From positions 797,995-861,994 of the forward strand of contig JAKMXF010000332.1 in NCBI GenBank assembly GCA_024704765.1: 64,000 nt of DNA, read 5' to 3'. Shown here in pieces: positions 8,201 through 64,000 of this stretch; positions within the stretch are counted from its first letter, which is position 1; every line of letters begins with the position of its first letter. The notes below the pieces were generated by a model. It saw only the letters and a list, made by a program, of their open reading frames with translations, was not told the origin of the DNA and ran no database searches. The DNA is from Oopsacas minuta (Eukaryota > Animalia > Porifera). Made by a program: the position numbers and the translations under genes.

Positions 8201-9287
8201 TATGCAAAATAACAGCGTTCTATAGCCTTTGTGATATTTTCCTTTGGTCAGTTGTAGTATACCTCCAACAAATACGACAAAAATTTCAGGAAATTTTGCA
8301 AACACGAGAAGCCATAAACAATAAAATGAACAAGAGTGGAATCAAACAGATTATAACTACTATTAGAGGCAATTTACATCATATAAGCAATTAAAACCAA
8401 ATAATTGGATAAGTGTGATGTCTAGAATTGAATTTAGAAATATTTTGACCATGTAGTCAATTAAAAGACCGAAATAACTAAAATAGAAATTTCTTACTTT
8501 TAGTATCCTTGAGAATGAAAAAAATACATATAATTCCCAATATATCAACACTATGCAAAAATAATAGAGAAAGAAGATCATCAAAAATGTTGTATATCAG
8601 TGTAGTTAATGGATATTTTATGATGACCACGAATATTAGCCCAAAAACTATTAAACTGAAAATGGAAGATTTTATTTTATAGGGGTATTATCTGAATTAC
8701 ATAGCAATCAGATAATATTTAAGTTTTATAAGAATAATTGCCCAGAATTAGGTAATATTGTCCCTCATCGTTTACTTTTTCATAATATACATACTAAGTA
8801 TACTTATGATTCACTACAATACACCAATAAATTAGGAAATTCGGACATAATTAGGCTAAAAAATGCCAATTAAGTTTCATGTGAGTTTAAATACACGGCG
8901 TCCCTATCTTCAATTATGTTTGGAGAAATAGGGCCCAATGGAAATCTGGTTTCAGAAAACGTATTTTTACACTTTGAATTCAATGGAATCTTTAGAAATA
9001 GAGTTCCAGGCGAAATTAGATAAATGTCAAACCAAAATTTCACGGGATATAATATTTTTCCCCCGTGCCCTAGAAAATGCCAATATTTGGTAAACGCAGC
9101 AGCTTCCGCCTGTTTGCCAAAGTTTGTCTCACTGCTAGATGGCAGTTCTAAATGAGTTTGTAGGAAGCTAACAGTGGGTATTTTATCTGGAGAGGGAAGA
9201 GGAAATTAACTAGGTGACAAAGTTTAAATAGAAATTTTGCTAAGTAGTAGAGCATCAGATTCATCAATCGAAACAAATTCGTTTAAC

Positions 9288-9386
9288 TCAAATGATTACA
9301 ACAACAGGAAGAAATTGCGACATTATATCGAAGGACGATATGTCTATATAATGTTGCAATTCCTTCCTGTTGTTGTAACTATTTGA
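9288..9386. repeat. 99-bp imperfect palindrome (about 40-bp arms, 19-nt loop)
   Basis: Left arm tcaaatgattacaacaacaggaagaaattgcgacattata versus reverse complement of the right arm tcaaatagttacaacaacaggaaggaattgcaacattata; 4 mismatches. Confidence 0.9.
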
Positions 9387-9540
9387 CTTCTTCTTCGAAA
9401 TATGTTGAGGAATTATAACTTCTTATCAAGAAGATCCAGAAACTAGCATTCATAATTAGATCGTAGTCAGTCAGCACTGTCATTGAAATAAATCAATGTA
9501 TATGACGCAAGGCCATCTTCCGCTAGCTCTCGAAGGTCTA

Positions 9541-10635
9541 CAAGGGTTGTTCATAAGTATTGAAACTAATGTATCGAATCCATATTCTAGTTAATACAGC
9601 TCTAAGCCTAGTATCAGATTACAAGCCTAATTTGATTGTATAAAATCTATACAAAATACTCTTTACTCTACTAGCATATTCTTCAGTATAAAGTTTAATT
9701 TGTATAGGCTACGTTTTTCAACTAATGAAATTTAGCAAAGAAGGAAAACGACAAATAATTTGGTCCAGTGGAAAAAGGGGAAAACTGGCTTATACATTCT
9801 TCGTGAAATGCAGGATATTTTCGGTGATGAATGTCCTACGAAAGCCACAATATATAGACGGATCGGACGCTTTGATAATGGCGATGTGGACCTCCACGAT
9901 AACCCTCGTCCAGGTTGTTCGACTTCCTCAAAAACCCGCAGTAATATCGAGAGGATCCAAACAATATTGGAAGAGGACATACGAATAACTCTGCGGGGGT
10001 TAGAAGAGGGGGTAGGTATATAAAGCCACATTACATTTGACTATCACTGAAGATCTGGAAATGTCGAAGGTAACTACGCGTTGGGTCCCAAAACTTCTTT
10101 CAAAATAACGCAAACACGAAAGGGTCAGAGTTAGCAAAGAATTACTTTTAAGATACAAGGCAGAGGAAGACTTTTTGGATCGTATAGTAATGGGGGATGA
10201 AACTTGGTTTCATTATTATGAACCAGAGAGCAAAACTCAATCGAAGCAGTGGAAGAGACGTGATGAACCTGTACCCATCAAGGCAAAGGCCGGAAAATCA
10301 GCAGGGAAGAGAATGGCAACAGTATTTTGGGATAGGGAAGGAATTATATACCTCGACTGGTTACCTGAGAAGACCACCATAAACAGTGATTATTACGTTG
10401 ACGAATTGAAAGAATTGCGTCAAGCGATTAAACAAGAGAGGTGAGGCAAGTTGACAAGCGGCGTATTGTTGCAACATGGGCTGGAAAAGTTACCAAAACG
10501 ATGGAAACGATGTATAAAGTTAAAGGGGGAAATCATCGAAACATTTGAAAATCAAATATGATGAGTATAGGTTTACTATATAGGTTTACTATAAAAATTA
10601 TGAATAAGGTCTCATTATTTATTGAACAACCCTTG
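9541..10635 (+). mobile_element. mariner element with internal deletion; transposase pseudogene ~9725-10556
   Basis: TIR caagggttgttca at both ends with TA flanks. WVPKLL and MGDETWFHYYEPE motifs are present. The DNA encoding the second and third catalytic D is deleted (jump from VLLQH to GLEKLPKRW). Confidence 0.92.
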
Positions 10636-13592: not shown

Positions 13593-14508
13593 CAGTCAGG
13601 GGACAAAAGTATTCGAACACACAAATATGTTGTCAGAAATTGTATACTCTTTCCTGCTCCTATATATTGTGTAGCCTATATTGGTAGCTGCTATCTAGTA
13701 ATTTGCATAGAATAAAATATGTTTTTCAAGAATATCAAAAAATATTTTCGATTTACACGTTTTGAAGGTATTAATTATTAATAATCATTAGATAATTAAT
13801 GATAATTAAAATATGTGGTAATTCAAAGCTTATTAAGAATCTATAATTTCTGACTTGATATTTGAATTCTACGTAGGCGAGCTACCTCAAATTGAAATTT
13901 CCAATCGGATTGAACAATTTTTACCAGAGTTATAGATGAATTTCAATTTGTGCCATTTGTGCCACCTTTTACCCAAGGTGGCACAAGTGGCCGCTACCAA
14001 AAGATTATTTTGGAATTCAAGGGTTAGCATAGTCATATCATTCGAAAATATTACTTCGACTTATTCCTCCTAACCCTAGTTGATTACCTTGTTGTGGCGC
14101 TTTTTCCTGCCACCTGTGCCACTTTTTTCAAAAAGTGGCACAAGTGGGGCAAATTGAAATTCTTCTATAACTTTGGTAAAAATTGTTCAATCCGATTGGA
14201 AATCTCAATCTGGGGTAACTTGCCTACGTAGAATTCAAATATCAAGTCAGAAACCATAGATTCTTAATAAGCTTTGAATTACCACATATTTTAATTATCA
14301 ATAATTATCTAATGATTATTAATAATTAATACCTTCTAAAAGTGTAAATCGAAAGTATTTTTTTGAAATTCTTGAATAAGCAAATGTTGTTCTATGCAAA
14401 TTACTAGATAGCAGCTACGAATATAGACTACACGATATATAGGAGGGGGAAAGAGTATACAATTTCTGACAATATATTTATGTGTTCGAATACTTTTGTC
14501 CCTGACTG
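13593..14508. mobile_element. Foldback Tc1-like non-autonomous element (916 bp, ~380-bp inverted arms)
   Basis: Ends TA|cagtcaggggacaaaagtattcgaacac and gtgttcgaatacttttgtccctgactg|TA. Arms 13593-~13970 and ~14130-14508 are near-complete reverse complements. No coding capacity. Confidence 0.93.
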
Positions 14509-16904: not shown

Positions 16905-17951
16905 ATGGCACAGATGATTCCACTATTTCTCGCAGAAGAAGAAACCTCTTCCTCAATGGCACGTCAACGAGTTTTCAGGGATCTCAATGATCCCCTAGAT
17001 TGTTATGATGATGTTGAACTTGTTCGACGTTTCCGCTTCTCTAGAGTTTCAATATCTAAAATTACAGAGTTGCTAGCTAACTATTTGAATTTCACCGAGC
17101 GTTCTTATGCTGCTTCCCCTCATTTGCAAGTTTGTGTGGCACTTCAATTTTTCGCTTCTGGAACGTTCCAGATAATTTGTGGAGATGGGATAAACGTAAG
17201 CCAAGCTTCTGCTTCTCGTTATATCCGAGATGTTTCTCTGGGTTTGCAAGCTATATACCATCAGTTTGTTAGTTTGCCTGCTGGTCTCAAGAGGGTAGAA
17301 GTCAAAAACAAGTTTTATGAGATTGCTCACTTTCCAGGCGTAGTAGGATTAGTTGACGGGACACATATACGAATCCAAAGACCCTCAGAAAATGAAGCAG
17401 ATTATATAAATCGGCATTTTTACCACTCAATTAACGTCCAAGCTATTTGCCAACCAGATGGAATGTTTAGTGATGTATTGGCACGTTTTCCTGGGTCTGT
17501 TCACGATTCACGAATTTGGAAGATTTCAGGTGTTGGGATGCATGTTGAAAATACCTTTTCAATAGGGGAGCATATATTAGGAGATAGCGGTTACATGATG
17601 AGGCCATATTTACTCACTCCTTATCGCCAACCAATATCCACTCCCCAATTTAACTACAACTATGCACATAAGAGGACAAGGGTTATTGTTGAACAGACAT
17701 TTGGGCGATGGAAAAGAAGATTCCACTGTCTTCATGGAGAGCTCAGGATGAGTCCTGATAAAGTTTGTTCCATCATAGTTGCTTGTGCAGTATTGCATAA
17801 CATAGCAATACTGTGGAAACAACCTCTCTTAGAGGATGAAGTCTCCGATGATTCCTATCCGGATGATGTTCTTGACTTTGAGGAAACTGTTGGACATTTG
17901 GCATCAAAGCATTACAGAGATCAATTTTCTATTCATAATTTTAGCAACTAA
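16905..17951 (+). CDS. Harbinger DDE transposase (HARBI1-like, 348 aa, uninterrupted)
   Basis: LQFFASG, VDGTHIRI, FPGSVHDSRIW, LGDSGY and VEQTFGRWKRRF motifs with all three acidic catalytic residues. Confidence 0.95.
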   Translation: MAQMIPLFLAEEETSSSMARQRVFRDLNDPLDCYDDVELVRRFRFSRVSISKITELLANYLNFTERSYAASPHLQVCVALQFFASGTFQIICGDGINVSQASASRYIRDVSLGLQAIYHQFVSLPAGLKRVEVKNKFYEIAHFPGVVGLVDGTHIRIQRPSENEADYINRHFYHSINVQAICQPDGMFSDVLARFPGSVHDSRIWKISGVGMHVENTFSIGEHILGDSGYMMRPYLLTPYRQPISTPQFNYNYAHKRTRVIVEQTFGRWKRRFHCLHGELRMSPDKVCSIIVACAVLHNIAILWKQPLLEDEVSDDSYPDDVLDFEETVGHLASKHYRDQFSIHNFSN

Positions 17952-18217
17952 ATTCACATAACATATATGTTGTGGTGTGATATGTAAACATTTTGCACAG
18001 TAAGTGATTATAAGGTAATATGGATTTTTGTAGTTTTGAAACATCTAAGTAGGATGTTGGTCTTTGTAGTTCTGAAACATCTAAGTAGGGTGTTGGTCTT
18101 TGAAGTTGGGATATTTACTTGTGAGATGTATCAAGTATCGCACTTGAATTGGGAGCTAGTTGTTGCATTATGAAAACTATAAATTGGTGGAGGTTATTGA
18201 TATTCCAAAGCAAGAGT

Positions 18218-18943
18218 ATGGACAAAGTTCGCAAAGTAAATTGGACAAAGGAGGAGGAGTATACGCTCATTGAGGCAATCCAGGATGCTGGAGATATATT
18301 GAGGGGTACTGCTGGTCAGTGCGCGGAGATAAACAAAAAAAAGACGAGGCTTTGGAACAATGTTATGCGGAAAATCAATTCCATCCATGGCAACAACCGA
18401 GATGTGAAAGATATAAAGAAGAAGTGGAACAATCTAAAAGGTTCCGCAAAAGCCCGTGTGGATTCCAGTCGAAGGGAAGCGAGGAGGACAGGAGGAGGGC
18501 CAAATGAAGCTGGTGAAGTGGAGGATGAAGACATCCGGATCCTAAGCTCTGATAGGGAATTATCCACATCTGTGACGGAGAGAGTATCACAGATATTCTC
18601 AAGTACGCCAGCGTTCACTGGAATATGTGGTAGTGTTGATATGTTTCAGGCCCCAACAGCATTGCCTTCACACACCGAGATTAGCGAAAGCAGTGAAGTA
18701 ACGCCAGTGTTTGAGGGACCAGAAGTTACTGTAGTTAATAGTCGTCCAGAGGGAAGGCGTAAGCGTAAGAGGAGCATCGAACAGTCAACATCGGTCTCTG
18801 ATTTACTTCCTCTGCAACGAGAAGTGCTTCTTAAATAGATGGAAGTATTCTCGGCTCAACTAGAGCTGATTGAAGAGCAGAGGGAGTATTACCGTTATAA
18901 AAAGCAGAGACTTTTAGAAAAAGATCAACAGCAGCAGCTTTAG
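18218..18943 (+). pseudogene. Harbinger Myb/SANT-like (MSANTD-type) DNA-binding protein with one in-frame stop
   Basis: MDKVRKVNWTKEEE...LW...IKKKWNNLK trihelix motif. A TAG at 18836-18838 is followed in frame by a coiled-coil tail MEVFSAQLELIEEQREYY...QQQQL* ending at 18943. Confidence 0.88.
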
Positions 18944-33345: not shown

Positions 33346-33794
33346 ATGATCACCAGAGTTGATTAGAGAAATACGCTTGTTAAATTCTTAGTTCATAACT
33401 TTCAGTACTTGTTAAATAAATTAGATTTACTTGATGTATACAATGGTTGGACTATCAAAGATAATAAATATAAATCATTATTTTATGTAAAATAGTCATA
33501 TCAGGTCAGACATCGTACATTAAAAGGACACTAAAAATTGACGAGAATTAAATACTCATGCGTTAGATATGGGAAAACACTTAATCCGGGTATCAGTATC
33601 CAAGATTGATGACATACGTGAAATTGAGACCATTATAGATGAAATAGAACTTTATAAATTACAACTGCAAATTCCCAAAGCTAGCACTTTAGTACAAACT
33701 TATGTAGGAATCGCGATAAAATGAAATAAACTGCACAAATTCCTCTATTAACAAACATGTTCGATATATTTAGTGAGTTATTTAAAAGTGAGTA

Positions 33795-33804
33795 GCGCAT
33801 GCGC
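33795..33804. promoter_or_regulatory. GCGCATGCGC palindrome (NRF1-type core) in the left TIR
   Basis: Centre of a perfect 16-bp palindrome gtagcgcatgcgctac (33792-33807). Confidence 0.8.
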
Positions 33805-34028
33805 TACATTAATATATAATTGGAATTTTGGAAAAAAGTAGGCTCTCAAAATACATCCTATTATAGTGTAATTAAATCCGCAGGAACTGATATTAATTTT
33901 TGAGTTTTGTTACTTATTTCTACTTCCTTTATTAGCAAAATCCCTAAATATGTTTCTCAATTAACTTTATACTTTACTCAATCAGTGTTTCCTCTTGATT
34001 TCCCATTCTGTACCCTTGAGTAGCCAAA

Positions 34029-35744
34029 ATGCCAAAGATCCCCAAATTGACAAAGAATAATGCTATAATGGTACTGACAGACATATTATCTGAGTTTCGT
34101 TCAGTAACAGGTGAATATACCGGAGCTGTATTTTCATGGCATGGAAAGCTTGGCTCTTTGGGTCCAGAAAAATTTCAAAGCTATATCACTGGGAATAGCG
34201 CTGAAATATCAAGAACTCTACTGACTAACCAAATATCTACAATTACGTCGGCGTCATCAAAGCCTGTCCGTGATCACGAAATCCTCAAGCTATTAGATGG
34301 AGATATATCTAGCTATAATGTACAGGGACTGCGAAGACTTGTTTCTGCGATTATAAAAGTGTCAACTGGTAAGTCAACGGTGTGAATTTATATAATTATA
34401 TGGGTCACTGATTATATATCTCTGTATTTTAGGGAAAGGTATGTTTTTTTGGAATGATCCTTCTCTCAAACCACCTTTTTGGCCCGAAAGAGTCCCTTTC
34501 GAAAACAGAAAAAGCGCATGTAAGATTCATCTGCGTATGATAATAGAATCATATAAGGATTACTCTATGAAAGCGCGAGTTTCAGTTCGCCCTCAATCTC
34601 AGAAGTCTCCAAGCTCTTCTCAAGCATCGCGACATGATATCTACCGTGACCGATCTAGATCTCCTCTTGATTTCGCTAGAGATGTAATACACCAAGAATC
34701 TGATGTAGATACTAGTGATGATTCCTTCGATGAGCTTTTTCAGCAACCCGTTATCGCTTCGAACAAACCTATTTCAGATCCTCAAACACCTACCCAACTT
34801 CCAGTCTGGTGACATTACTCGGAGTTAAGCCATTGGATCCTATCCAAATAATCACTCTTCCCATTAGTTTAAATGAGAAAAACTTGTCAATTTCTGAATT
34901 GTCAAGTCGTAATACTTTCCTAACAGGCACCACCATTAATGCATTCTGTGTAAGTTTATTATACATTGAAATTCAATCCGTTTTGTTAGCAAATATTCTC
35001 ATACCATATATGTATTTGTAGACATTACTGAAGAAGAATTTCCCCCATTTACAGGGACTTCAGGATACTATTCTCTTCGAAGTGAGTTTCTCGGTTCAAA
35101 TTTTTGAATTTTAAATCAATATTTGATATTCAATTAATTCTTAGAATCGTCAATTCGTCAAAGCTCCTCGTCCTAGTATGCAGCTGCATCACGATGGCGC
35201 ACTTCACTGGGTTTGCTCCAGTATTGATGTTGAAGGGCATGTAACTTTATATGATTCGCTATCTACTGGGAGAATATCTGATGAATTAGCTGTGCAATTG
35301 GCCTTTCTATATGAGAATGATGCTGATCATGAGCTGAAAGTCGCCCTTGCTCCTATTCAGCAGCAAAGAGGTGGGGCGGATTGTGGTTTATTTGCAGCGG
35401 CAGTCTGTTTGACAATAGCAACGGGAGGCGACCCAACCCAAGTATACTGGAAACAGTCAAGAATGAGATCTTACCTAACTGATTGTTTCAACAGCGAAAT
35501 TTTGATACCCTTTCCTAAGATAGAAAGCATAGTATTACGATCTCGCCTGACTACAAATCTAGGGACATATTTAAAGATAAAGTTATGGTGTTTATGTCAT
35601 CTACCCAGTTGCGCGTCAAAAAATATGATTGAATGTCCCAAATGTCTTAAATGGTTCCACAAACCATGTGTAGGACTTGAAGATATTGACAAAGACATCG
35701 ATAACTTTTATTGTCACAATTGTCGTGAGTCTCCTAACATATAA
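34029..35744 (+). CDS. Transposon accessory gene: NRF1/EWG-like DNA-binding domain, S/P/Q-rich linker, Ulp1-like C48 protease, PHD finger (4 exons, one frame break)
   Basis: Predicted exons 34029-34368, 34433-34949, 35022-35081 and 35145-35744, separated by GT-AG introns of 64, 72 and 63 nt that preserve frame. One frame break near 34770-34810. Motifs: IKVSTG|KGMFFWNDPSLKPPFWPERVPFEN; LHWV...YDSL...QQQRGGADCGLF; CLC...MIECPKCLKWFHKPC...YCHNC. Confidence 0.85.
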
Positions 35745-35751
35745 ACTATTT

Positions 35752-38700
35752 TCATATATTATTATTTTGTGATAGAATATGTAGATTCAAACATGCTAGA
35801 AAATATCTTGTAGTGAAGAATACATTATCAATACGCATATATGCGATTTGTGTTGCTATCCTTCTTAGTGATGAAAACAACTGCTCGCAAATTTGTGAGT
35901 TTAGCTTTTTCATCTCGTCAGTCTGAATTGATCTGAAAGAATAAGAGGGATTGCACTTGTGGTTTGTAGAATGGAATCGATCAATCAGAAATGTTGTCTT
36001 ACGAAATACTTTGGGTCCCTATATAAAAAATCACGAATTAATTTCTATTTGAAATCTCGATTATTTATCATTTATACCCAATTTGTTATGTGCACTTACC
36101 TTTTCATACATGTTTTGTGTAAGTTGCAAGCATTATCGTAGATGATCACTTTTGGCTGTTCTCTGAATATGGTCATTAACAAATTATAAATTACAACTGT
36201 AGATTCGTGTTGTCTGAGGATTTGGAAACCATAACAAATCCTGTGCTTACAAGCGATTGCTACTATTCCGGGGGAAAACCTTTTGTGAGTTGGAAACTTT
36301 TTGAGACACGGTTCAGCTGACTCAACTTCAGGATTTTCGTATACTGGCAACCTGTACAATTATAGTAGAATGGTAAAATATAAAAAAAGTTGAATAGCAT
36401 TTAGTATTTTCAGTATAAACACAATTACAAGTTTGAACTTACATGTAGTTTGTTGTGAATGCTGGGAAATAATTGTAATAGTTTTCGCTTTGTGGAGAAT
36501 ATTTCTACTAATTTTCTTGACGTTCTACTAAATAAACTCTCTATTTGTGTCAGGATTCTTTTCAACAGCGGGAAAACTTTGGGATGTAAAGTGACAAACC
36601 CTGTGCATGTGATATCTTTATTAGGTTTGATAGAATTGAATAAGATATCCAATGTATACATCTTCTGATATAATGAATTAAAGGAATCTTCACTTGCTGA
36701 TTTTCCATTGGCAAGAAGAGCTATTGCTTTTCGTTCATTCGGTTCCAGCAGAGAGAATTGGAATACTCCTGATATTGGATCTGTATGGCAAAGGAGTTTT
36801 ATGACTTTCTTAACGTGTATATATTCTTCACTTATAGTCACTAAATTTTCTGTTAAATATAATCAGCCATTTCTTTATGAATAGACTTCAATAGGTCTTT
36901 TAGCGTATTTTCTGTCAAACCTTCAGAACAGAATTTAAGGAGTTGCTTTCTAATTGCTGTGTTGGGGATAAAAACACGATCTGAAAATGGGATCATAGGG
37001 TATTACTGATCCTGATCGAATTTTGCATCCACTTCTGGTACTGATTTCATTGTTCCCATCGCTATGCCATCTAAAATTATCACATCGGGATGATTTTTAC
37101 ACTTTGTACATATGTAGTTCGAGTCATAATCTATGTCTACTGTTCTCAGATAGGCGTTCCATACCTGATAAACAATGTGATAATGGAATGTATTCGTTCT
37201 ACCCATTCTGATAAGCTTCCTGTTCTTGGCACTAAAGAGTAAAACGAAGAATTAGATTGTATGTATATAGGAATTTTAATTTATCAAGAATATTATTTTA
37301 AACAATACATACCTCAAGTAACCGTACAAAGTATTTCTAGACATGGTCATCAACTCGCTATAATCATATAACAAACTGTAATGAACAAAGCACTTGTTGA
37401 TGTTTAACAGTAAACTGTTCTGACCTTCGAAGACTGCCAAACAATTGCAAGGTCCACTGCATCTTGAACTGTAAACTATATACTTACAATATAATTACTG
37501 AGTTACCAAGCACAGGCAAATTTAGGGAGGGGGTAAATTAGGACGAGTTGATTGCAATCGAATGAACAATCTTATATGTAGACCAAATAATTATTGAAAT
37601 TCCTTATAATTGCAAAGACTTGTTTTCAACGGCTAAATACGTAGAAAAACCGATCATACTAAATTAATATTGCGACCGAGCGAATGGTTCATTGATGATA
37701 AATATATACCTTTGTAATCTTTGAATTCTTTAATATCATTTTCTAAATAGATAACTATTCCAACCTTCTCTAGTTTAAGCTTCTCCTCTTCATTGAATTT
37801 GAAACCATAGTCACAAAATTCCTTTTCAGGATACATGTTTAAAGGTAAATTGATGCCATGGCAGAGCTGATGGTTGTAAATTGCTATTTGGCTTTCATCT
37901 AGATTGAATGGTATTGCTCTTGTTGATATCGTGTTATATTCAAACTTTTTTTGTGTATTTGATCCAGTATTTTCGAGAATATTATGGAGTCTAGAATGTT
38001 GTTTGCACTTTGAAGAACAAGAACAACATAACCACCTATCATTATTTAATTGGAAGTTGTGAAAAGTATCATCTGTCAACAGAAAGATATCGTTAGGACT
38101 TGGGAAATAATATATTATGTCTTCTAGAATGTTTACTTCACAAACTTGCAAACAATCATTTTGTGAACAGAGTTCAAATGTTTGATAATGAGAACAAGTA
38201 TCACTATAACAATTAGCGCATAGATTGCTGTTTGTTTCAATTATGATTCTCCTTTTGTTTAGTACAACGGTTCCTTGAAATACAAAATGTTTAGTTATGG
38301 TAGTGAGAATAGTAAATGTACAGTAGACTCCGATTAATAGGGTCACTTGGGACCAGGCCATTTGACCCGATTAACCGAAATAAAGGTGTTGGGCACTACG
38401 AACCGGAGCAGAGAGACAAACATGCAAACAGACAACAATAATAGCGATAATAACGTAAATTTACCTTGAGAGTAATCATAATCTGCAATTATAACATATT
38501 CACTATCCTCTAACTTATGTATGTGAGACTTCAATATCAATAGTTTTACATACTGGTCAATTATAGGCATTTCTACTTGTTTCATTTCTGGTTCTGAGAA
38601 GCAATCAGGTTGACACTGATCTATGCGAAATATTATATTGAATCAACAAGCAACTAAAGTTTGCTTGAAAGCATAAGGAATTAAGAATATAATTATCACC

Positions 38701-38880
38701 TGGTTTTGACCATGTTGGTACATCTGATTCTATCAATTTTAATGATTCCCCTTCTGATAGGCATACTTTGTCGATGTCTAATGTGATGAAGCTGATATCT
38801 TCTTTCTCCGAGATTTTTCGTTTTTTTGGGTATATATTATCAGATCCAGTTTGTGAAGTTACTTTTTCAGCCATTTCCAA
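35752..38880 (-). pseudogene. Multi-exon KDZ transposase (SWIM-like and CxC cysteine clusters plus KDZ catalytic domain; HMGXB3 C-terminal-like), several lesions
   Basis: WLCCSCSSKCKQH; RCSGPCNC...LLN...YSLLYDY; CTKCKNHPDVIILDGIAMG; SPGIVAIACKHRICYGF; IIYDNACNLHKTCMKR; FLIDRFHSTNHKC; LNSQICEQLFS. Frame-consistent introns at 38621-38699 and 38396-38464, plus a GT-AG intron at 36019-36099. In-frame TAA at 37003-37005 and frameshifts near 36850, 36480 and 36000. Confidence 0.88.
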
Positions 38881-39075
38881 AATGAAATTATCTAACGAAT
38901 GGTATAAATTTATATATCTACTTCTATCATTATAAATGCACCAGCATTCCAGTGACCACTTGTCGTAATGTGGTTTCGAAACTTATCTAATCACATTCAA
39001 TTCAGCAGCTTGGGTAACTATGGTTGAAATGATAATGCGTATCTATAAATATGACATACCAATAATCCTAATGCA

Positions 39076-39108
39076 GCGCATGCGCTACTCAAAATGCAGC
39101 GCATGCGC
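39076..39108. promoter_or_regulatory. Two GCGCATGCGC palindromes (39076-39085 and 39099-39108) in the right TIR
   Basis: 23-bp tandem duplication aatgcagcgcatgcgctactcaa. Confidence 0.8.
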
Positions 39109-39124
39109 TACTCATTTTTAAATA

Positions 39125-40497
39125 CAGTGCGTTCGGAAATTATTGGCAGTGAATTTGATTTGGTTCCATTCAATATCTATGTTAAGAATGATCAAAATCA
39201 TATGATTTCTAATAATTCGGTACTCTCTCAAATAGAATATACATGAGTAACTAACATATAGCTAATAATTTATCTTCTTACCTCCACCTTTGATGCATAA
39301 CCGAATTCTTTTGTCCATTGATAGACAAAATGGCTTTAAAAATTCAGGGTCAAATGTGTTCCATATCTCCAAAATAGCTTCTTTCAACTCATTTGAGCTA
39401 GTAAATCTCTTTTTGAGGAGTCTCTTCTTTAGTACAGCCCAAAGATTTTCAATTGGGTTCAGATCGGGGCTATTGGAGGGCCAGTCAATCGGATGTGGGA
39501 CAAATTCCTGTTTCCAAGCCTTTGCTGCATTTCCTGTATGTATAGGACTGTTATCTTCCTGTAATATCCATTTATTTCCGTATAAAGCATTAGCTTCTTG
39601 TATAAGACACTCATTTAGAACTGTTTTGTATCGTTCCTGGTTGAAGTTTTCGGTAAAAACTTTGAGGTTTGTTTTGCGCATTACCGAAATACCACCCCAA
39701 ATATGTAGCTTCGCTGGATGTTTGAAAGTTGGCAGGTTAATGGGCTGTCCTTTCTTTGTCCATACATATATCTTTCCTGAATTCATCCATATAGAGGATT
39801 CATCAGTAAAGAACACTTTAGACCAGTTCTGACCCCTCATTCGTTTACACCATTCCATTCGTTTAGTAATATGGAGTTGTGACAAGGCTGGAATTCTTAC
39901 TGCCTGGTGATATTGTAAGCCTCTCCTCTTCATTTCCTCCGATAGTGTGCTTTTGGCAACTGGAGTACTCAATTTTGATCAACATTCATTCAGAGTGATC
40001 CTTGGATTGTGTTGAACGAGTGCCATAATCCTATTCCTATCAGACTTGTGCAATATTTGAGGTCGACCTGCTCCTTTCTTATGAGTCAAGCTCTTTTTGT
40101 CAGAAATAGACTTCAAAACACGATATACTGTCCGCTCTGGTATAGCTAGTCGTCTTGATATTTCAGTCGCTTTTGTTATCCCAGCATCAAAGAGTTCCTT
40201 TATTCTGATTCTATTCTTTTCCTGAGCCTTCATACCAAAATTGTGGAAAAATATTGTTAGTGAAAGTCGGAAAATATGGGTCTAAAATGTGTGAACAAAA
40301 ATAATAAGCACATATTTAATGTCAAAGATCATTTGGGATAGATAAGGCAGAAAATTAGAATGTCAGTGGATCTATACATTATATTTCGAGTATATTATAT
40401 GTTGCTATAACTTAGACGTCGTAAATAAGGTTGTTTTAGAATATTTATAAAGGATAATGAAAATAGTATTTACTGCCAATAATTTCCGAACACACTG
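39125..40497 (-). mobile_element. Tc1 (DD34E) element; transposase 40233-39262 with a single in-frame TGA at 39979-39981
   Basis: 30-bp TIR cagtg(c/t)gttcggaaattattggcagt(g/a)aat; flanks TA and TG; FTDES and QEDNSPIH-(34)-PIEN motifs. Confidence 0.95.
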
Positions 40498-40599
40498 TGT
40501 AAGATTTAGTAGGTTTTATTGAAGTATATTTACTTCTTCGATAAACACGATAAATACATAGTTATGGAAAAATAAAATCCTTTCTTTGGAAACGAGCAA

Positions 40600-43284: not shown

Positions 43285-46200
43285 TCAATTCTCCTTTTCA
43301 AGGCTTTTCCGGGTAGCTTTCTTGGCAATCTCGATCAATTCTTCAGAAATAAGATCCTGACTTAAGTAACAAGCTGTATCGTGATCCATCTTTATATTGA
43401 GCAGATCACATGTTGTGGATGGGCTCAATAAAGAACGGGAATCAGTCCCAATTTTTTTAACCATGCTGAATAAACGTTCTGGATCAGCATTTGAATGCGG
43501 TAGGGTGAGAAGTATCTTTGAAAGTTTTGATAAGTTAGAGTAAGCAAGAGGGGAATCAGAAAGATCTACTGAAGTAACCACTTCTAACCTGCTCATTGCT
43601 GACCAGAAATGGTCAATAGCAGCTATATCTGTTGGGTTATATGCAGTGGCGTAACGATGTCTAGTGCCGCTGGGGGCACATGCTCTAAACGCCGCCCCCT
43701 AAAACGTAACTTTATGAGTAATTATCCTCAACAACTCCTGGGAATGGTGTTGTTTGAAATTTCCCTTCCCCCTTCCCTGGTTCATTAAATACCATGATTA
43801 GATATTGTTTACAAAATATGTGATTACGCACATATGTTTTAACTTTTAACCCAAAATACAAAAATACTACCGCTTCGGCTCGTTAGTAGCTCTTTTTCAC
43901 AGCCTGATCTTTCGTGCTTTTAGTCTCGCAAACTTATCGATCACATGGGTGAAGTCAGTTGCCTCAGTAAGACCTCTTTCGATTGACAAAAGAGCAAGAC
44001 TTGACAGCCGCTCTTGTCCCATGGTTGAGCGAAGGTAGGTTTTGATGAGCTTCAGTTTTGAAAAGCATCTCTCGCAAGATGCCACACTCACACACATGGT
44101 TAGGAATGTCCTCAGCATTATCAGTAGGTTAGGGAACGACATTTGGTGATACCACTACACTAACCACTGAAGCAGGTCGAGCGAATTCCAATGCCCCACC
44201 ATCTCTCCTGTTTGCATCTCGAAACTTCTAATGTGCCGACGCACACGACGGACCTCATTCTTCAAATTTTCAGCAGATATATCGAAGTAAATAGCAGTGA
44301 GCAGTTCAATTGCCGAGTCGATGTCCTTGTCCTTGTTAGAATCCATTAAGAGCTCCATCTTGGTCAGAAATCCGAACTTGGCGTTTACGTCTATCATATG
44401 GCTAGTTCTCCGTTTAATCTCCCCATGTAATGTATCCATTATCTGAAGCTGCTCTCGTGCAACCTCCTCTTGCAATGACAAACTAACATCATCTGCATCT
44501 TCCCCCATCATCTTCTTTCTCCGCCGTACCCTTCTTTCCGTCGGAATCCCATTTCCCTCACAGAATGATACAGCCTTTATCTTTGCTGATTCAACTATAT
44601 TCTCCCGTTCCTCAAAACAAAAGATTACAAGGGCTCCAAGCTTGGTAGCACAAAAGTCCAGTCCCAGGCCAGGAGTTTGGAGAAGATTTGAGTATCGTTG
44701 ATTTCCTTAAGTACAGGATTCCAGAAGTTCAGATAGGCTAAGAAGATGTAGGTTAAGTGCTAGACAGCATGATATTTGCTTCCGAGCGCGCGATAGCCGT
44801 CCCGTGACTACTGTCCCGGAGTCGTTCCAATGCATCAATAATAGATTCAAACTCGATATTATTACATCAACAGCATCATCTCTTGAGCTCCATCTTGTTT
44901 CGCATGTCCTTTTAATAGTCCTTCCTGGAACATGCTGTTTAAATACTTCCTATCGGTGAGTTGATGTCGAGAAGAAAGCAAAGAGACGATCCAGCGTATC
45001 AAAGAAGGTGATGGCATTAAATGAAGCTTGCGCAGAGTGTACTCCAGCTAGGTTCAAAGAGTGATTGTTACAGGGAATGTATATAGCGAGTTTATTCACA
45101 TCAAGAATTCTGCGCTGCACACCACTATGGATACCGGCCATCGTAGTAGCGTTGTCGTACCCTTGTCCCAGCATGTCTTGGACATTAAGATTGTCTTCCT
45201 TTAACTTGGCCAAGATTAGATTTGTCAGTGCTTCAGCCCCCTTCTTCTCAAACTTAATTAAACAGAGGAATGTTTCCTTCACCTCAACATTTCCACTAGA
45301 GATTTTCACATATCTCAGTACTTGTGACATTTGATCGTCATGAGCAAGATCTGGGGTACTATCAAACATAATCGAGTAGTACTTTGCCTCCCGAACTTCC
45401 TCAAGAATCTTTTCCAACACATGTTGACCGAGAATAGAGATAAAATCATTCTGTATCGCTGGGGAGAGATACGAAAGAGTGTTTGGTTGGGATTGGATAC
45501 GAGTGAGATGTTCTCGTACTACCGGATCGTAGTTGCCAAGGAATTTCACAAGCTCAAGGAAGCTTCCTGTATTCTCGGTAGATGACAGAGCCTCTCTGTG
45601 ACCTCGGAATTCGAGATTTTACAGAGAGAGGAAGCAAATGCAGTCGAGAATTCTCTTTAGAATATTCCGCCACTTGGACACACTATTATTCAGGGATTTT
45701 TGGTTCTCGGCGTCTATCTTTGCACTCTTTTCAAGGCCCATGCAAAGCTCGCCCACTGTAAACAGGAGTTATCGTGACCTGCTGAGTCTTCATGTGCATG
45801 AACACGCGGATTTAACTTGCTCCAGTCTCCAAATCCAATAGCTGTTCCGAAGGCGCTTGATGTATTGCCGAACAGACGGCAACAAAAGCACTGGAGACAA
45901 TTCATCAAAGGCGAGTACACTGGCCATGTGCGTAGAAGCTGCTCCCCCGTTGTCTAGAGTTCTGTAAAACCAACTGCGATTCATGCTTCTACTTTTATTT
46001 GCGTTGTTTTGGAAGAGTGGGAAGGATCCATCTTTGTTCTGGAGACCGAGGGGTCCTCTATGAACAATCTCCACTCGTAATGCGTCTGGGATAGAAGTGG
46101 GCCAGGTTCCAATGTCTTGGAAGAAGTTTCCCTTGGATGAGTGCCGCTTTCGCACTCGTGTATAGTTTCGGATGGATCCGGATCACTCCTGGTTCCAATA

Positions 46201-48358
46201 TCACTCTCTACACTTCCATTATCTTCTAATGGCGGATCAGGGATCACGCGTTCTTGACCAGTATTTTGGGGTGGATGTTGTACAGGGACTAGAAAACGTT
46301 GCAATTCAACAGCTCCTATCTTGTTTTGTGCGTCGCACTCTTTGCGTTGACGTTTGTAACCAGCCCCGCTCCGGCGGGAGCGAACCTTTGCACGATTGGA
46401 GTTCATCTCATATACAAATAGTACTATATTTAACATATAATATTATTATATATCGGTTAGCACTCACAACTGCTATCTATTATACGATTGTAGATAATTA
46501 ACCAGTTTAAACAATGGTTTAATCAAGAGGGGTGGATTAAAACTTTAAAGAGACAACCCTGGTTAGAACAGATATAAATTATCATGGAGGGATTACATGA
46601 GATTTATCATATTTGTGTGGCCAATATGTCAAAATGCCGCCCCCAGAAAGTGCCGCTGGGGGCACGTGCCCCCATTGCCCCCGAGTCGTTAAGCTACTGG
46701 TTATATGATGGAAGCTGATTATCTGGTGTAATCTTATAAGCAACAAACTCTTGAATTATTTGGCCAATTTCCTCAGAAGTAATAGTCATGAATTGTTTAC
46801 AGAGGCGTGTAATGGATTGGATACAACAATGTGTACGATTACGAGGATTAAGAAACGCTAAGTCGCTTAATGTATCGTTCCTGTGAGGGAACTTAGCGAG
46901 CATTTTGAAACAACAGTCTCATAAAACCAGCGAACACTATCGTAGAACCCGTCACCCATTAAGGTGTCATGTATTTCATCTTCAAACTCTGAAATAAGAT
47001 CTAAAGTGTCATTTCCAACAACTAGTCTATTTCTAGGTAACAGGTTCACTTTGTTACGATAGTCAATGGCTAGAATTTCAGTATAGCGATAATTACTTCA
47101 GGTTGTACAAAATTAGCTAAATAACCACGAAGAAGTAATAGTGTATCTTCTTTTATGGCACCGATGCGGCTAGCATGAGTTTGAAATAGTATAGTAAATT
47201 TGTTGAGTGGCTAAAGAGCGAAGTGTGCAAATGTACAAATTAATTTACCTTCAAACTATTTAAAGAGTCAGCGACTCTTTTAATACGGTTGTTTTTCGGT
47301 TCTATATCCATTTGCCTGTCAAAATATGCTCTCAAGGCTGGCCACGGTTTAAGCAAGCGTTTGAGGCACCTAAGTAGGCTCAACTACCTGGTTGTGCAGT
47401 GCTTCAAAACTCTCACGGGTTTGATTTCCTCAAACTCAGCTTGGATCACAGAAATTCTTCCCATCTCTTAGCACTATATTTGAAGTGGTAAAAACATCAA
47501 TAAGTAAAACATCCACAGATATAGGGAGAGACTTTAGTACAGCAGCACCAACCAAGTGAGCTAAGTTGCACAAGCACCCGAGACTGAACATGCGTGGTTG
47601 CTTTTCACCTATTCGACTGAGTACTGAGTTACGCGCTCCAACCATAACGTTTGCGGTATCTGACGCAAATCCGATCACATTTTCCCAAGGAAGATTACGT
47701 TCCTCGAAAACAGTGCTTAGAGCATCAAATAGATTTTGAGCTGTTGCAATACTACAAATTGGCATTGCCAGAAATCGTGTCATAGCTTGGTTGTTTCTAT
47801 TGCACCAATATCTCACCAGGACAGTAAAATATTTATGATCTGTCATATCGTTTCCGCCATCACAAAGGATTGAAAATGGTTCAGAGCGGCATTTATCGTT
47901 GACCATATTTCTAAGAGATGGAGCCAAAGCGTGAGTGATAATGGCTGTTGCTTTTGTTCGGGCACATGAATAAGATTGAGCAATGTGGCTATCAGGAAAC
48001 ATAACTTTAGTCAAAGGAGTGAGGTGGTCTGCGACGAGGAACGGCAAATTATGTTCTGCGACAAATAAGGAGAAATATATTTCTGCTGACATAACTTGTT
48101 TGTTCAAGGGGTTCAAAGATGCCGCAGCCACTAGTGCAGTAGAAATAGAAGGTTGTTCATCTACTTGACCTAGCAAACTTTTATGTTTAGCTGTCTTTCG
48201 GTGACGATCTACTTCATGTTTCCCACCACCAGAAATACAAATATCAACTTGGAAATCGTACAAAATGCAAAACCAACACCCTTCTTGCTTGGTTTCATTC
48301 TAACGCTGCCCCACTCTTCCTTGTATCTACATAATATCTTTGGCCTCTTTACAGTCAT
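43285..48358 (-). pseudogene. BED-finger hAT transposase of the outer element, split by the nested insertion
   Basis: AFCT..VDICISGGGKHEVDRHRKTAKH; LFVAEHNLPF; SCARTKATAI; LCDGGND; HCTTR*LSL; LPHSNADPERLFS. Removing 43644-46699 plus one TSD restores ...LPSYNPTDIAA.... Confidence 0.9.
43644..46699 (-). mobile_element. Nested ZMYM1/TTF-finger (Tip100-type) hAT element; transposase pseudogene ~46406-43897
   Basis: TIR cagt(g/a)gc(g/t)taacga (12/14 match); perfect 8-bp TSD GTTATATG; CFCCRLFG, FRGHRE, YLSPAIQN, MFDSTPD, GQGYDNA and SVASCERCFSKLKLIKTYLRS motifs; several stops and frameshifts. Confidence 0.95.
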
Positions 48359-53835: not shown

Positions 53836-56152
53836 CACAGCCCTGCGGAATAAAAAATTTTATTTGCTGATTGTTATTGCAAAACATTTTCTAATCCACA
53901 TTTTAATACTGATTTTGAATAATTTTGTAAAATATACGTATCACGTCTAGTTTTTTTGCAAAATTATTTTTAAATATTGGTATATTTATCGATGAATGCA
54001 TGATACCTCTACAAGTAAAATAGTGAAAATCTGCCATTTATAAATTTTTACTAAGAATTACAATAAAATTTTTATTGATAATATAATCTTAGTTAATAAA
54101 TAATTTGAATATATTAGTCTGAATCAGGAGTAAATTTCCGTTTTTTTGACATTCTAGCATGAATAACATCAATACAATCTCTCTTGAGGCACCAGCAGTA
54201 ATCAGCCATCATATGAACGTCCCACCTCCCCTGATATCGTGTTTCCATTGTTTTTATGTCTTGGTGGAATCGTTCACCTTGCTCCTCGGAAACAGCTCCA
54301 AGATTCTCTGGAAAATAGTCAATATGACTGTGAAGAAAGTGAACTTTTACACTCACATTGCAGCCGAGATTCTTGTAAGATTCAATCAACTCATTCACAA
54401 GTATTTTATAATTAGGAGATTTCGTTTTTCCCAAGAAGTTTTTCATGACATCTACAAATGCATTCCATGCACATTTTTCTTTGCATATCATAGAATTTGA
54501 AAAATTATCATCTCGAACAAGTTGTCTTATCTGAGGACCGTCGAATATACCGGCAATTCTTTTTTCATCACTTAGATAGTAAAACTTCTCGGTAATATAT
54601 TTGAAACAATTTCCTTCTTTATCTAATGCCCTTACAAACTGTTTCATCAATCCTAATTTTATATTAAGTGGTGGAAGCAAAATCTTGAGAGGATCCACTA
54701 GATGCTCGTGAATAATGTTCTTATCTCCAACATTAAGATTGGTTCTAGCTGGCCAGCTCTGTCTAGAATAGTGTTCGCTCTTTGCACGACTGTCCCATAA
54801 GCATAAAAAACAAGGGTATTTTGTATATCCTGATTGCTGTCCCAAAAGAATACATATGATTTTTAAGTCACCACAGATTACCCAATTGTGCTGGTTATAA
54901 TTAATTTTATGAAGCACAATTTTCATGTTATCATATCGTTCCTTTAAACTTACTAAATGTCCAATTGGTATGGAACTAAATTTGTTGCCATTATGAAGTA
55001 GAACACATTTCAAACTTTGTTTTGAACTATCAATAAAGAGTCTCCAATCATTAGGTACATACGGACATCCAAGAGCATTAACTAGCGGTGAAACATCATG
55101 ACAAAACACAAATCCGTCTTCCATTATGAAATATTTCAAAAATTCGATCTCTCTGTCCCTATATGAGTAAAATTTTGTTTCTGGGAGAAGCAAGTTTTTT
55201 TCTTTTAGCCTAGAACCTAACAACGCAGATTCTTTAGGTAAATCTAAATCACGTACCAAATCATTTAATTCAGACTGATTAAATAACTGTGGAGAATTAG
55301 AACGAGATAATACACACGGAATAAAATCCTCATCTTCTCTGATTAATGAATCTCTAGTTTCACAATCATCAATTTCCGAGATAACATCCAAATTAGTAAA
55401 TTTTGGAACAGGTACATCAATAGAATGGGGAACGGGTCGTATTGCTGAATGTAAATTTGGATACTTGATCAATGACTTGGTTTTAGCATTGAATCCGGAA
55501 ATATTCGCCATACAAAAGTAACAATTGCTAATGTGATTTTGTGGCTCTCTCCATATCATTGGAATTCCAAAACTTAAACTCTTTCTGATTCCTTTTGTCC
55601 ATTGTCTCAAATTTTCTACACAAGATCGGCACACTGTATGTGGAGCCCATGTTTTGTCTTGATCACCTAATCTCATTCCAAAATATCCTAAATATGCTTT
55701 TTTAACAAATCCTGTTATTGCCGTAGTTTGTTTAGAAGTCATAAAACTCCCACAAATATAACAAAAGACGTCTGGATCATTACTGCACCTTCTCCGATAA
55801 GCCATATGATAATAAAATATCAAAATAGTAGACTATAGTACAATAAAGCTGTATATAACAAAAATAAAGATAAAAAAAATTATGTAGAAAAGAATGGAGT
55901 TAAAGGGACTAATTAGAAAATGCAATAAAGCACGCATCTGTTTATTTCAAAAGACAAAAATTCACACATGTATCAAATATAATCATTTATTCTAGGGAAG
56001 TGTACTTAAAAAAATCGACTTACATTAAAATGACATTTGAGTAAAAACGAGACATGATAGGGGAATTCTGATGACAGATTGAGAATCAGCATACTCAAGT
56101 TAACTAAAAACAACCCATGGATAATAATCAGCAAATTTGACGCAGGGCAGTG
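53836..56152 (-). mobile_element. Full-length Chapaev3 (CMC superfamily) transposon, 2317 bp
   Basis: TIR cac(a/t)gccctgcg; 3-bp TAA TSD at 53833-53835 and 56153-56155; shared subterminal tttgctgatt motif. Confidence 0.9.
54114..55823 (-). CDS. Chapaev3 transposase, uninterrupted 569-aa ORF
   Basis: CYICG...GDQDKTWAPH.VC..C...PMIWREP...CYFC zinc finger; FIDSS, ICGDLK and EQGERFHQD catalytic motifs; KLGLMKQFV. Confidence 0.9.
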   Translation of the reverse strand: MIFYYHMAYRRRCSNDPDVFCYICGSFMTSKQTTAITGFVKKAYLGYFGMRLGDQDKTWAPHTVCRSCVENLRQWTKGIRKSLSFGIPMIWREPQNHISNCYFCMANISGFNAKTKSLIKYPNLHSAIRPVPHSIDVPVPKFTNLDVISEIDDCETRDSLIREDEDFIPCVLSRSNSPQLFNQSELNDLVRDLDLPKESALLGSRLKEKNLLLPETKFYSYRDREIEFLKYFIMEDGFVFCHDVSPLVNALGCPYVPNDWRLFIDSSKQSLKCVLLHNGNKFSSIPIGHLVSLKERYDNMKIVLHKINYNQHNWVICGDLKIICILLGQQSGYTKYPCFLCLWDSRAKSEHYSRQSWPARTNLNVGDKNIIHEHLVDPLKILLPPLNIKLGLMKQFVRALDKEGNCFKYITEKFYYLSDEKRIAGIFDGPQIRQLVRDDNFSNSMICKEKCAWNAFVDVMKNFLGKTKSPNYKILVNELIESYKNLGCNVSVKVHFLHSHIDYFPENLGAVSEEQGERFHQDIKTMETRYQGRWDVHMMADYCWCLKRDCIDVIHARMSKKRKFTPDSD

Positions 56153-62750: not shown

Positions 62751-64000
62751 CAGGGTGTCTAATAAGTTCTGTTATACATTTTCGCGCCTTAGACAGTAGC
62801 TATTAATATACTTATGAAGTAATCTTCTAGAATTTCTTGTAGCATTTTTGGCGCTCTTTCAAATTATACCAAGTATATATCATTCAAGTTGATGATTTCC
62901 CAGAAAATCATGCTAGAAGAAATTCGTTCAAAAATTGTCACTTTTCACGAATCTGGATTTAGCAATAGTGAAATTCTAAAAAGGCTAAAAAATGATAAAG
63001 TGAATCCCATGTTGATCTATCGCACAATAAAACGATATATAGAGACTGACAGCGTGTCCGACAGGAAACGAATTGGTCGTCCAAGATCCGCCCGCACACC
63101 AGCCCTGAAGAATAGTGTTAGATGTCAAATCCTAAGAAATCCCCGGCGTTCAATGCGAAAAATGTCTCGTGAATTCTGTGTCAATCACGAAACGATGCGG
63201 AAATTGGTTGTAGAGGACCTAGGAATGAAGTCCTATAAGCGGAAAACGTACACCATCTTAATGACTCCATACGTCGTAAGCGATTCGAAAGATGCATACA
63301 ACTAAAAGCCCGATTCGCTCCTGGGACTGAAGATCAGATTCTCTTCTCAGATGAGAAGCTGTTCACGGTTGAGGAGGCAAGCAATCGTCAAAACCACCGT
63401 ATACTTGCTTCTCGAAGTCAGGATATCTCAGATAGCATCAAGTACATTGATAGAGTCCAGAAGCCTCTTTCTCTGATGGTATGGGCGGGAGTGTCGGCAG
63501 ACTCACGGACAAACCTGATTTTTGTCCCCCAAGGAGTGGAAATAAACTCCCAGACGTACAGAGAACTGGTCTTGGAGCCTGAAATTGCGTCTGCGGGTGA
63601 GAAGCTCTTTCAAAACCATCCTTGGACTTACCAACAAGACTCTGCGCCTGCACATGCTTCAAAAGTATCCCAGAGTTGGTTCCGTGAGCAAAATATCGAT
63701 TTCATAAGTAAGGATGAATGGCCACCATCAAGCCCAGATTTAAACCCACTCGACTATTCTGTTTGGGCAAACTTGGAGAGCAGGGCCTGTGCGAAATCTC
63801 ACAAGAGTTTGGAGTCCCTCAAAGTTAGTTTGTTGAGTGAATGGCAGAAAATCCCACAGGAGGAGCTGCGAAAAGCTGTCCATCAGTTTCGGAGCAGACT
63901 AACTTCCGTAATTCATAAAAAGGGAGGCTATATTGAATGATATTTGTAATTTGTAATTAGGAACATAAGTCCTAAGAAGATAGAAAGTGTCATGGCTTTA
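62751..64000 (+). mobile_element. maT (DD37D) element; transposase 62889-63940 with a frameshift; right TIR beyond the window
   Basis: TA|cagggtgtctaataag; FSDEK and QQDSAPAH-(37)-NPLD motifs; frameshift near 63250. Confidence 0.92.

Follow-up and report, generated by a model that had tools for sequence, protein, structure and literature searches.

A two-gene KDZ transposon family of hexactinellid sponges with NRF1-consensus sites in its ends and a partner protein that may bind them

We analyzed a window of 64 kb from the sponge Oopsacas minuta (assembly GCA_024704765.1, contig JAKMXF010000332.1, positions 797,995 to 861,994 of the forward strand) and found, between window positions 33779 and 39124, a copy of what is almost certainly a two-gene family of KDZ (Zisupton-like) DNA transposons, of the cut-and-paste type, in hexactinellid sponges. 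Its minus-strand gene encodes a KDZ transposase, and its plus-strand gene encodes a partner protein in which a putative NRF1-type dimerization/DNA-binding domain is followed by a Ulp1 (SUMO-type) cysteine protease and then by a PHD finger. Both ends of the element carry GCGCATGCGC, the sequence bound by the NRF1 homodimer, each DNA-binding domain of which reads a TGCGC half-site through R206, N242 and R244 (PMC10810270). From sequence comparison we propose, with moderate confidence, that this is a two-gene KDZ family whose partner protein would bind the ends of its own element.

Exon-level protein searches and contig look-ups yielded, from O. minuta and four ENA assemblies (ERZ25071281, ERZ25766962, ERZ25072730 and ERZ25069837), ten related loci that share this layout and fall into at least four subfamilies:
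L003, O. minuta GCA_024704765.1: 95.9% identical to the window over 33779-36452, then truncated
L010, O. minuta GCA_024704765.1: complete copy of another subfamily
L001, L002, L004-L006, L008, L009 and L011, the four ENA assemblies: 40-90% amino-acid identity
Coverage of the ENA contigs is about 100-415x, except for the L005 contig at 3x. The KDZ gene is convergent to the partner gene in every partner-bearing locus (the window, L001-L003 and L006-L011), and related copies sit in unrelated flanks, some of them truncated, interrupted or nested. Searches with single exons widened the family further: the exon for the catalytic half of Ulp1 plus the PHD finger has 23 homologues, among them seven annotated O. 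minuta proteins, and the domain encoded by the first partner exon forms 47 clusters at 50% identity among 1.84 billion representatives. These counts, the different flanks and the 7-8-bp direct repeats described below all uphold the proposal, made in a first-pass annotation of the window, that this is a mobile element. The rival view of a host gene pair between chance inverted repeats could appeal to the introns and to the annotation of such genes as ordinary genes in O. minuta; it has as good as no chance of being right, since the many copies lie in different flanks, the conserved ends come with flanking duplications, and the window copy has disabling mutations.

A repeat search of the window delimited the element by arms of 32 nt that are 94% complementary. 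Their 18-nt core, GAGTAGCGCATGCGCTAC, is found solely at the two element ends in 64 kb (0.00 occurrences expected), and position 33779 is the exact start of homology to the 96%-identical copy L003. Together with the open reading frames, the repeat search bears out the earlier statement that the arms enclose exactly two genes, convergent and both multi-exon; the bounds then given, 33786-39117 with repeats of about 30 bp, were correct in outline, and the repeat extends slightly wider, to 33779-39124. The features that define the ends are:
33779-33810, plus strand: left terminal inverted repeat, TATTTAAAAG-N6-GCGCATGCGC, with the NRF1 palindrome at 33795-33804
39093-39124, minus strand: right terminal inverted repeat, with the NRF1 palindrome at 39099-39108
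39069-39091, minus strand: inner subterminal repeat unit, with the NRF1 palindrome at 39076-39085
33768-33774, no strand: left target-site duplication ATTTAGT, matching 40504-40510 after removal of a nested Tc1/mariner element
33775-33778, no strand: four bases GAGT between the duplication and the left repeat, probably the true left terminus
39125-40499, minus strand: nested Tc1/mariner element, foreign to the KDZ element, which entered a TA located 4 bp from the right-hand end of the latter
40500-40503, no strand: four bases TAAG on the far side of the nested Tc1 element, completing the right terminus of the KDZ element
40504-40510, no strand: right target-site duplication ATTTAGT

Three complete copies have direct repeats at an identical offset of 4 bp outside the inverted repeat:
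Window: ATTTAGT + GAGT ... TAAG + ATTTAGT, 7 of 7 positions matching
L008: CTTTTCCA + CATA ... CCTC + CTTTTCCA, 8 of 8 positions matching
L011: AGATGTGC + CATA ... GCTC + AGATGTGT, 7 of 8 positions matching
A chance 7-mer match at a fixed offset has a probability of about 1e-4. These insertions are flanked by 7-8-bp duplications, and because the duplications lie 4 bp outside the repeat, the element ends 4 bp beyond its inverted repeat. The "defined ends" of the first-pass annotation are therefore real as repeats, with the true termini placed 4 bp further out. On the partner-gene side the four terminal bases are CATA in L001, L003, L008, L010 and L011, and on the KDZ side they are usually SCTC (CCTC or GCTC), so that the termini are asymmetric. 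The window departs from this pattern with GAGT and TAAG. Each resembles the reverse complement of the type found at the opposite end, which would fit an inversion of the interior between the two arms as one possible cause. An alternative 8-bp duplication directly adjoining the inverted repeat (TAGTGAGT and CAGTGCGT, 6 of 8 positions matching) was rejected because its CAGTGCG... sequence is the inverted repeat of the nested Tc1/mariner element.

The transposase gene reads toward the left end:
35752-38874, minus strand: KDZ gene of seven exons, 38874-38700, 38620-38465, 38273-37710, 37475-37313, 37231-~36429, 36351-36100 and 36018-35752, the 3' border of exon 5 (~36429) being approximate
The predicted transposase is about 800 amino acids long. 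Pfam KDZ (PF18758) matches exons 6 and 7 of the window collinearly, at profile positions 76-135 (19.7 bits, E 8e-4) and 146-202 (21.9 bits, E 1.6e-4). Both matches fall under the 26.6-bit cut-off because an intron splits the domain; the same split profile pattern is seen in L005, and a precomputed KDZ match exists for the annotated product of L003, the 96%-identical copy. The minus-strand translation contains VIILDGIAMG, VIIYDNACNL, LIDRFHSTNHKC and QICEQLF, and their ILDG, IYDN, DRFH and CEQ cores are unchanged in L005, L008 and L010; in all, four subfamilies keep the catalytic motifs. The assignment to the KDZ family, first made from this D, D, DxxH, E pattern, is thus supported by two collinear domain matches as well as by the L003 product, and the whole pattern is present in the window and kept in these three copies. 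For the upstream cysteine clusters the expected profiles did not appear: neither CxC5 nor CxC6 matched any scanned exon, Cys-rich exon 3 included, and exon 4 of L005, the exon that carries CSGPCNC, shows a weak similarity to CxC4 (E 0.004; 17.4 bits, cut-off 26.9). HMG_box was likewise without a Pfam match on any exon scanned. KDZ intron 2 of the window (38274-38464) contains about 95-190 nt of GC-richer sequence that L006 lacks.

The partner gene comprises four exons, 505 codons in all:
34029-34368, plus strand: exon 1, N-terminal domain resembling the NRF1 dimerization region plus helix alpha5, with the R206 equivalent (QGLRRLV)
34433-34949, plus strand: exon 2, candidate NRF1 DNA-binding motif GKGMFFWNDPSLKPPFWPERVPFENRKS, S/R/D-rich linker and start of Ulp1
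35022-35081, plus strand: exon 3, Ulp1, 20 codons with GT-AG borders
35145-35744, plus strand: exon 4, Ulp1 catalytic half and PHD finger, with the stop at 35742-35744
The splice of intron 1 agrees with the annotated O. minuta protein P0003, and exon 3 is kept in L002, L003 and L007-L011. Exon 4 contains the Ulp1 catalytic residues H, D, (Q) and C in HW, YDS, QQQ and DCG. In Pfam scans, Peptidase_C48 matches exon 4 of the window at 20.8 bits (cut-off 20.7) and that of L008 at 22.6 bits; PHD scores 23.8 bits in the window, just under the cut-off of 24, and 26.5 and 25.9 bits in L008 and L009, and several exon-4 homologues carry precomputed PF00628 (PHD) matches.

At L001 the partner gene (8395-9702) takes a different course: after ...TTINAFC, one open frame continues into an OTU-like cysteine protease (Pfam E 1.4e-8), which stands in place of the catalytic C-terminal half of Ulp1 and the PHD finger. 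This locus lacks most of the KDZ gene. The replacement supports a selected protease function and suggests that a deconjugating protease is what is selected.

The ends of the element have a distinctive layout. In a window of about 35% GC, GCGCATGCGC, a 10-bp CpG-rich palindrome, has three occurrences in 64 kb, all within the element ends. The same sequence lies in the ends of L002, L005, L006, L008, L010 and L011, and the ends of L001 and L003 hold one-mismatch versions. Each end consists of 4 bp, TATTTAAAAG, 6 nt and then 1-9 tandem units of about 22-25 nt centered on GCGCATGCGC; at the right end of the window copy, a 22-nt unit is present twice in tandem. In the window, L002, L008, L010 and L011, 16 nt separate the outer edge of the repeat from the start of the first palindrome, and this spacing is kept although the intervening bases differ among subfamilies. 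The KDZ-side end of L005 (5433-5642) holds 8.8 tandem 24-nt units with a perfect GCGCATGCGC in each, and other ends hold 1-4.

To characterize the N-terminal domain of the partner protein we used three spliced annotated relatives, P0031, P0074 and P0022, in place of the window proteins for Pfam, PDB and AlphaFold analyses. P0031 and P0074 (O. minuta LOD99_10372, encoded in L010) match Nrf1_DNA-bind (PF10491) at 25.4 and 25.2 bits, above the 23.5 cut-off (E 1.4e-5), over profile positions 87-178, and P0022 matches it with E 0.0098. Of the three domains first assigned to the partner, Ulp1 and PHD are thus seen by Pfam, and the NRF1 threshold is passed only on the spliced relative P0031/P0074, whose automatic UniProt name already indicates as much. 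In a phmmer search of PDB, NRF1 ranks first for the spliced relative (E 0.011 over 95 residues).

Alignment to NRF1 chain 8k4l_A points to retention of residues that contact bases. R206 aligns to R96 of P0031, the leading R of TLRR (QGLRR in the window), a residue that hardly varies among 37 sequences; N242 aligns to the N of PFENRKS in the window, and this position is N in four of five subfamily representatives; R244 aligns to a K that is invariant in these representatives. An AlphaFold model of P0031 residues 1-165 has a predicted local distance difference test score (pLDDT) of 61 overall and is of moderate confidence over residues 1-107. Among 350,542 PDB chains its best Foldseek match is NRF1 chain 8k4l_B, followed by the MADS domains of SRF, MEF2 and SEPALLATA, and the same MADS-type structural neighbors were described for the NRF1 dimerization domain (PMC10810270).

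Several observations weigh against the proposal as a whole. The likeness to NRF1 is weak, and exon 2 of the window is marginal when taken alone, both in Pfam (Nrf1_DNA-bind, E 0.15) and in PDB (8k3d_A, E 0.09). A profile built on exon 1 gave no NRF1 match in PDB or among 1.84 billion proteins, and a four-sequence profile of exon 2 worsened the NRF1 match to E 0.98, level with ribosomal eS7 noise; scanned singly, one of the four members of that profile matched Nrf1_DNA-bind. The AlphaFold model drops below a pLDDT of 50 in the DNA-binding part, and neither the Foldseek match to 8k4l_B (E 0.029, template-modeling score 0.27) nor those to the MADS domains are significant alone. L009, of the most divergent subfamily, departs from the pattern twice: its partner reads PFIKKSK against PF(E/Q)N(I/R)KS elsewhere, with no evident N242 equivalent, and its ends (5059-5094 and 14031-14090) hold mostly GCGCA half-sites and GCGCAGTACAYR repeats with one full palindrome. 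Protein and site may have co-varied here, in a single case. At no offset tried did L010 or L009 yield a flanking duplication, and in none of the copies examined are both genes demonstrably intact; the KDZ gene of L005, which lies on a short contig, is apparently intact. End binding could instead fall to the Cys-rich N-terminus of the KDZ protein, and host NRF1 could bind the same GCGCATGCGC sites.

A rival reading is that the NRF1 likeness is spurious, with an unrelated fold in the partner protein, recognition of the ends by the cysteine clusters of the KDZ protein and a palindrome present by coincidence. Such a reading would fit the marginal sequence scores obtained throughout at the level of the window, the exon-1 profile that finds no NRF1, and the weak CxC4 match (E 0.004), which marks putative DNA-binding clusters in the transposase itself. 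We nevertheless consider it very unlikely, because four independent lines agree against it: P0031/P0074 pass the curated Pfam threshold, NRF1 comes out on top in the PDB sequence search as well as in Foldseek across all 350,542 chains, and the cognate 10-bp CpG-rich palindrome recurs in every subfamily's ends in a genome of 35% GC.

The position of the sites bears on a second alternative. GCGCATGCGC lies about 200-235 bp upstream of both start codons, and because transcription of each gene runs inward from a point about 200-235 bp within its end, the sites may act as promoter elements too. The units could then serve host NRF1 and drive the inward genes, leaving the NRF1-like domain of the partner irrelevant or competing; NRF1 sites are classical promoter elements (PMC10810270), and the sequence in the ends is the exact host-type consensus. 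We hold this to be rather unlikely as the whole explanation. Up to nine tandem units at a single end (L005) and a 16-nt spacing to the terminus that holds in all subfamilies resemble the build of transposon ends more than that of a promoter, and it would be a coincidence that the element encodes the same rare domain family with the base-contacting R and N kept. A promoter function can coexist with end binding.

Based on these comparisons, we propose that the partner protein would dimerize and bind the GCGCATGCGC units at both ends through its NRF1-like domain. Binding would mark or pair the termini for the KDZ enzyme, which would in turn cut at the TATTTAAAAG termini. The resulting division of labor would be like that between TnpA and TnpD of En/Spm or between the Myb-like protein and the transposase of Harbinger. 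A Harbinger-like arrangement had already been suggested in the first-pass annotation, and it is better motivated now because the ends carry NRF1 consensus sites, which that annotation did not include; we infer the arrangement by analogy. Once bound, the partner could also bring a SUMO/ubiquitin-type protease and a histone reader to the chromatin of the element, possibly opposing its silencing.

That last step can be taken further, with the partner as an anti-silencing or regulatory factor that sits on the ends and strips SUMO or ubiquitin-like marks and has no part as a transposition cofactor. We hold this to be less likely than not. The Ulp1 protease is conserved with its catalytic residues, as is the PHD finger, and in L001 an OTU protease replaces the Ulp1 half and the PHD finger, all of which would suit such a factor. 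Its closest parallel is VANC of the plant VANDAL elements, and plant Mutator-like elements carry Ulp1-like genes. The role is also compatible with that of a cofactor, with nothing that separates the two, and the SUMO protease that is reportedly fused to the transposase in fish Zisupton would argue for a role tied to transposition.

The copy in the window is a non-autonomous, mutated (dead) member of the family, and the earlier description of a self-contained system fails for it. Comparison with other copies located four lesions:
near 34794, partner exon 2: 1-bp deletion and frameshift relative to L001, L002 and L003
37003-37005, minus strand: in-frame TAA stop in KDZ exon 5, CAC in L005, L002 and L006
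36855-36865, minus strand: 16-bp deletion with frameshift in KDZ exon 5, from alignment with L005, L002 and L006
36013-36016, minus strand: 1-bp deletion with frameshift at the start of KDZ exon 7, from alignment with L003, L005, L008 and L001
Both 1-bp deletions (~34794 and ~36014) lie in C4 runs, a pattern typical of long-read homopolymer errors. They could be assembly errors; the TAA stop and the 16-bp deletion cannot be. Two intron models were considered and rejected. A 21-nt mini-intron at 34809-34829, a multiple of 3 in length, would leave the reading frame of the partner gene unchanged, and the 1-bp deletion relative to three copies explains the shift; a 26-nt intron around the TAA at 37003 fails because the other copies read CAC in frame.

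Across the family, the ratio of nonsynonymous to synonymous substitution rates (Ka/Ks) between copies is 0.16-0.24 for the partner gene and 0.08-0.32 for the KDZ gene, at Ks values from 0.5 to more than 2. Purifying selection therefore acted on both genes as the family diversified, and these ratios, together with the recurring convergent pair, indicate that both are needed. Divergent paralogous elements adjoin some of the copies (L003:14187-15898 and L002:2496-3343) with 35-57% amino-acid identity in KDZ and 38-52% in the Ulp1-like protein, so that several old subfamilies coexist in one genome. Secondary insertions occupy introns and exons of several copies: we noted short inverted-repeat insertions resembling miniature inverted-repeat transposable elements in L008 (5823-6285) and L009 (9690-11580), and a THAP-domain element inserted in L002 (10764-13858).

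The KDZ superfamily is said to have been described by Iyer et al. in 2014, and the fish Zisupton transposase, in work attributed to Bohne et al. in 2012, reportedly carries its SUMO protease in the same polypeptide. The HMGXB3-type label of the first-pass annotation is at most tentative: HMGXB3, a vertebrate KDZ-derived gene reported to share the KDZ domain, differs from the sponge locus, which is mobile and multi-copy and in which no HMG box was detected. We know of no biochemical dissection of KDZ/Zisupton transposition, end recognition included. Like other members of the Zisupton/KDZ superfamily (PF18758), the sponge element has a KDZ domain with D, D, DxxH and E motifs, a multi-exon gene between terminal inverted repeats and an association with a Ulp1/SUMO protease; upstream cysteine clusters, represented in the sponge by a weak CxC4 match, may be a further common trait. 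Zisupton makes 8-bp target-site duplications (PMC12730594), in agreement with the 7-8-bp repeats of the sponge elements. It is described as a multi-exon element with one protein of up to 1400 amino acids (PMC9297572); the transposase has about 800 amino acids in the sponge and about 1400 in fish and nematode Zisupton (PMC9297572). The sponge protease, by contrast, is encoded in every copy by a separate, convergent plus-strand gene that fuses it to the NRF1-type domain and a PHD finger, and the sponge ends hold tandem NRF1-consensus units.

Multi-gene KDZ elements are known from fungi, namely KDZ1/KDZx1 of Cryptococcus (PMC11343200) and the TET/JBP-carrying Kyakuja, Dileera and Zisupton elements (PMC12730594). 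They likewise have one or more extra genes between inverted repeats and 7-8-bp duplications (PMC11343200, PMC12730594), so that a second gene in a KDZ element is not in itself new. Unlike the sponge partner, their extra genes encode TET/JBP dioxygenases or proteins of unknown function, in elements of about 10 kb or larger, and none is reported with a DNA-binding domain that matches a motif in the ends (PMC11343200, PMC12730594). The new features of the sponge family are the type of partner gene and the way in which its product corresponds to the ends.

Compared with NRF1/EWG/P3A2 (PF10491; 8K4L, 8K3D), the partner protein resembles the dimerization and DNA-binding region over about 95 residues, including the R206 and N242 equivalents, and the element ends hold the exact NRF1 consensus GCGCATGCGC. 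It differs in its low identity of about 15-25%, in a shorter N-terminal region, and in having Ulp1 and PHD instead of the C-terminal activation region. As a multi-copy, transposon-borne gene, it is not an NRF1 orthologue. Our literature searches for a link between the NRF1 domain and transposons found nothing relevant. With PIF/Harbinger and En/Spm-CACTA elements the family shares a catalytic gene, a separate gene that would provide sequence-specific DNA binding, and reiterated subterminal motifs. The transposase fold family and the DNA-binding domain are unrelated, so the likeness would be one of function; neither the DDE_Tnp_4 nor the Myb/SANT domain of PIF/Harbinger is found in the KDZ element.

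The window is AT-rich and full of transposons. The nested Tc1/mariner element at the right end has 38-nt inverted repeats at 39124-39161 and 40461-40498 and an open reading frame on the minus strand (39265-39972) that matches DDE_3 in Pfam (E 4e-20); the right-hand copy of its duplicated TA now reads TG. A Tc1/mariner fragment detected with Pfam lies at 62889-63937. A PIF/Harbinger pair consists of a DDE_Tnp_4 transposase at 16905-17951 (E 4e-43) followed by a Myb/SANT-like gene at 18149-18838 (E 1e-13). Further transposon-like open reading frames are at 44953-45549, 47439-48263, 54117-55823 and 7637-8140, one of which matches DUF4371 (hAT-associated); the 569-amino-acid frame at 54117-55823 and the related fragment at 7637-8140 gave no Pfam match.

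The family pairs a 10-bp palindrome, reiterated at a fixed distance from both termini, with an element-encoded domain that would belong to the sole family known to read it. The SUMO-protease module associated with Zisupton can be encoded apart from the transposase, and in L001 an OTU protease has taken its place, which suggests that deconjugating enzymes have a selected role where transposon chromatin is concerned. Recognition of this CpG palindrome by NRF1-type domains is methylation-sensitive. On a speculative reading, the element would thereby sense whether its own ends are silenced and direct its SUMO protease and histone reader to them. To our knowledge, the NRF1/EWG/P3A2 module, with its unusual mode of DNA binding, has so far been seen only as a domain of metazoan transcription factors, and its presence in a transposon from an animal lineage that branched early would bear on the origin of this transcription-factor family. 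The transcription factor may have the module in common with an end-binding protein of some ancient KDZ lineage, either because the factor was domesticated from that protein or because the element captured the module long ago; we find this distinctly doubtful at present. If capture were the case, the transposon would be spreading NRF1-type sites.

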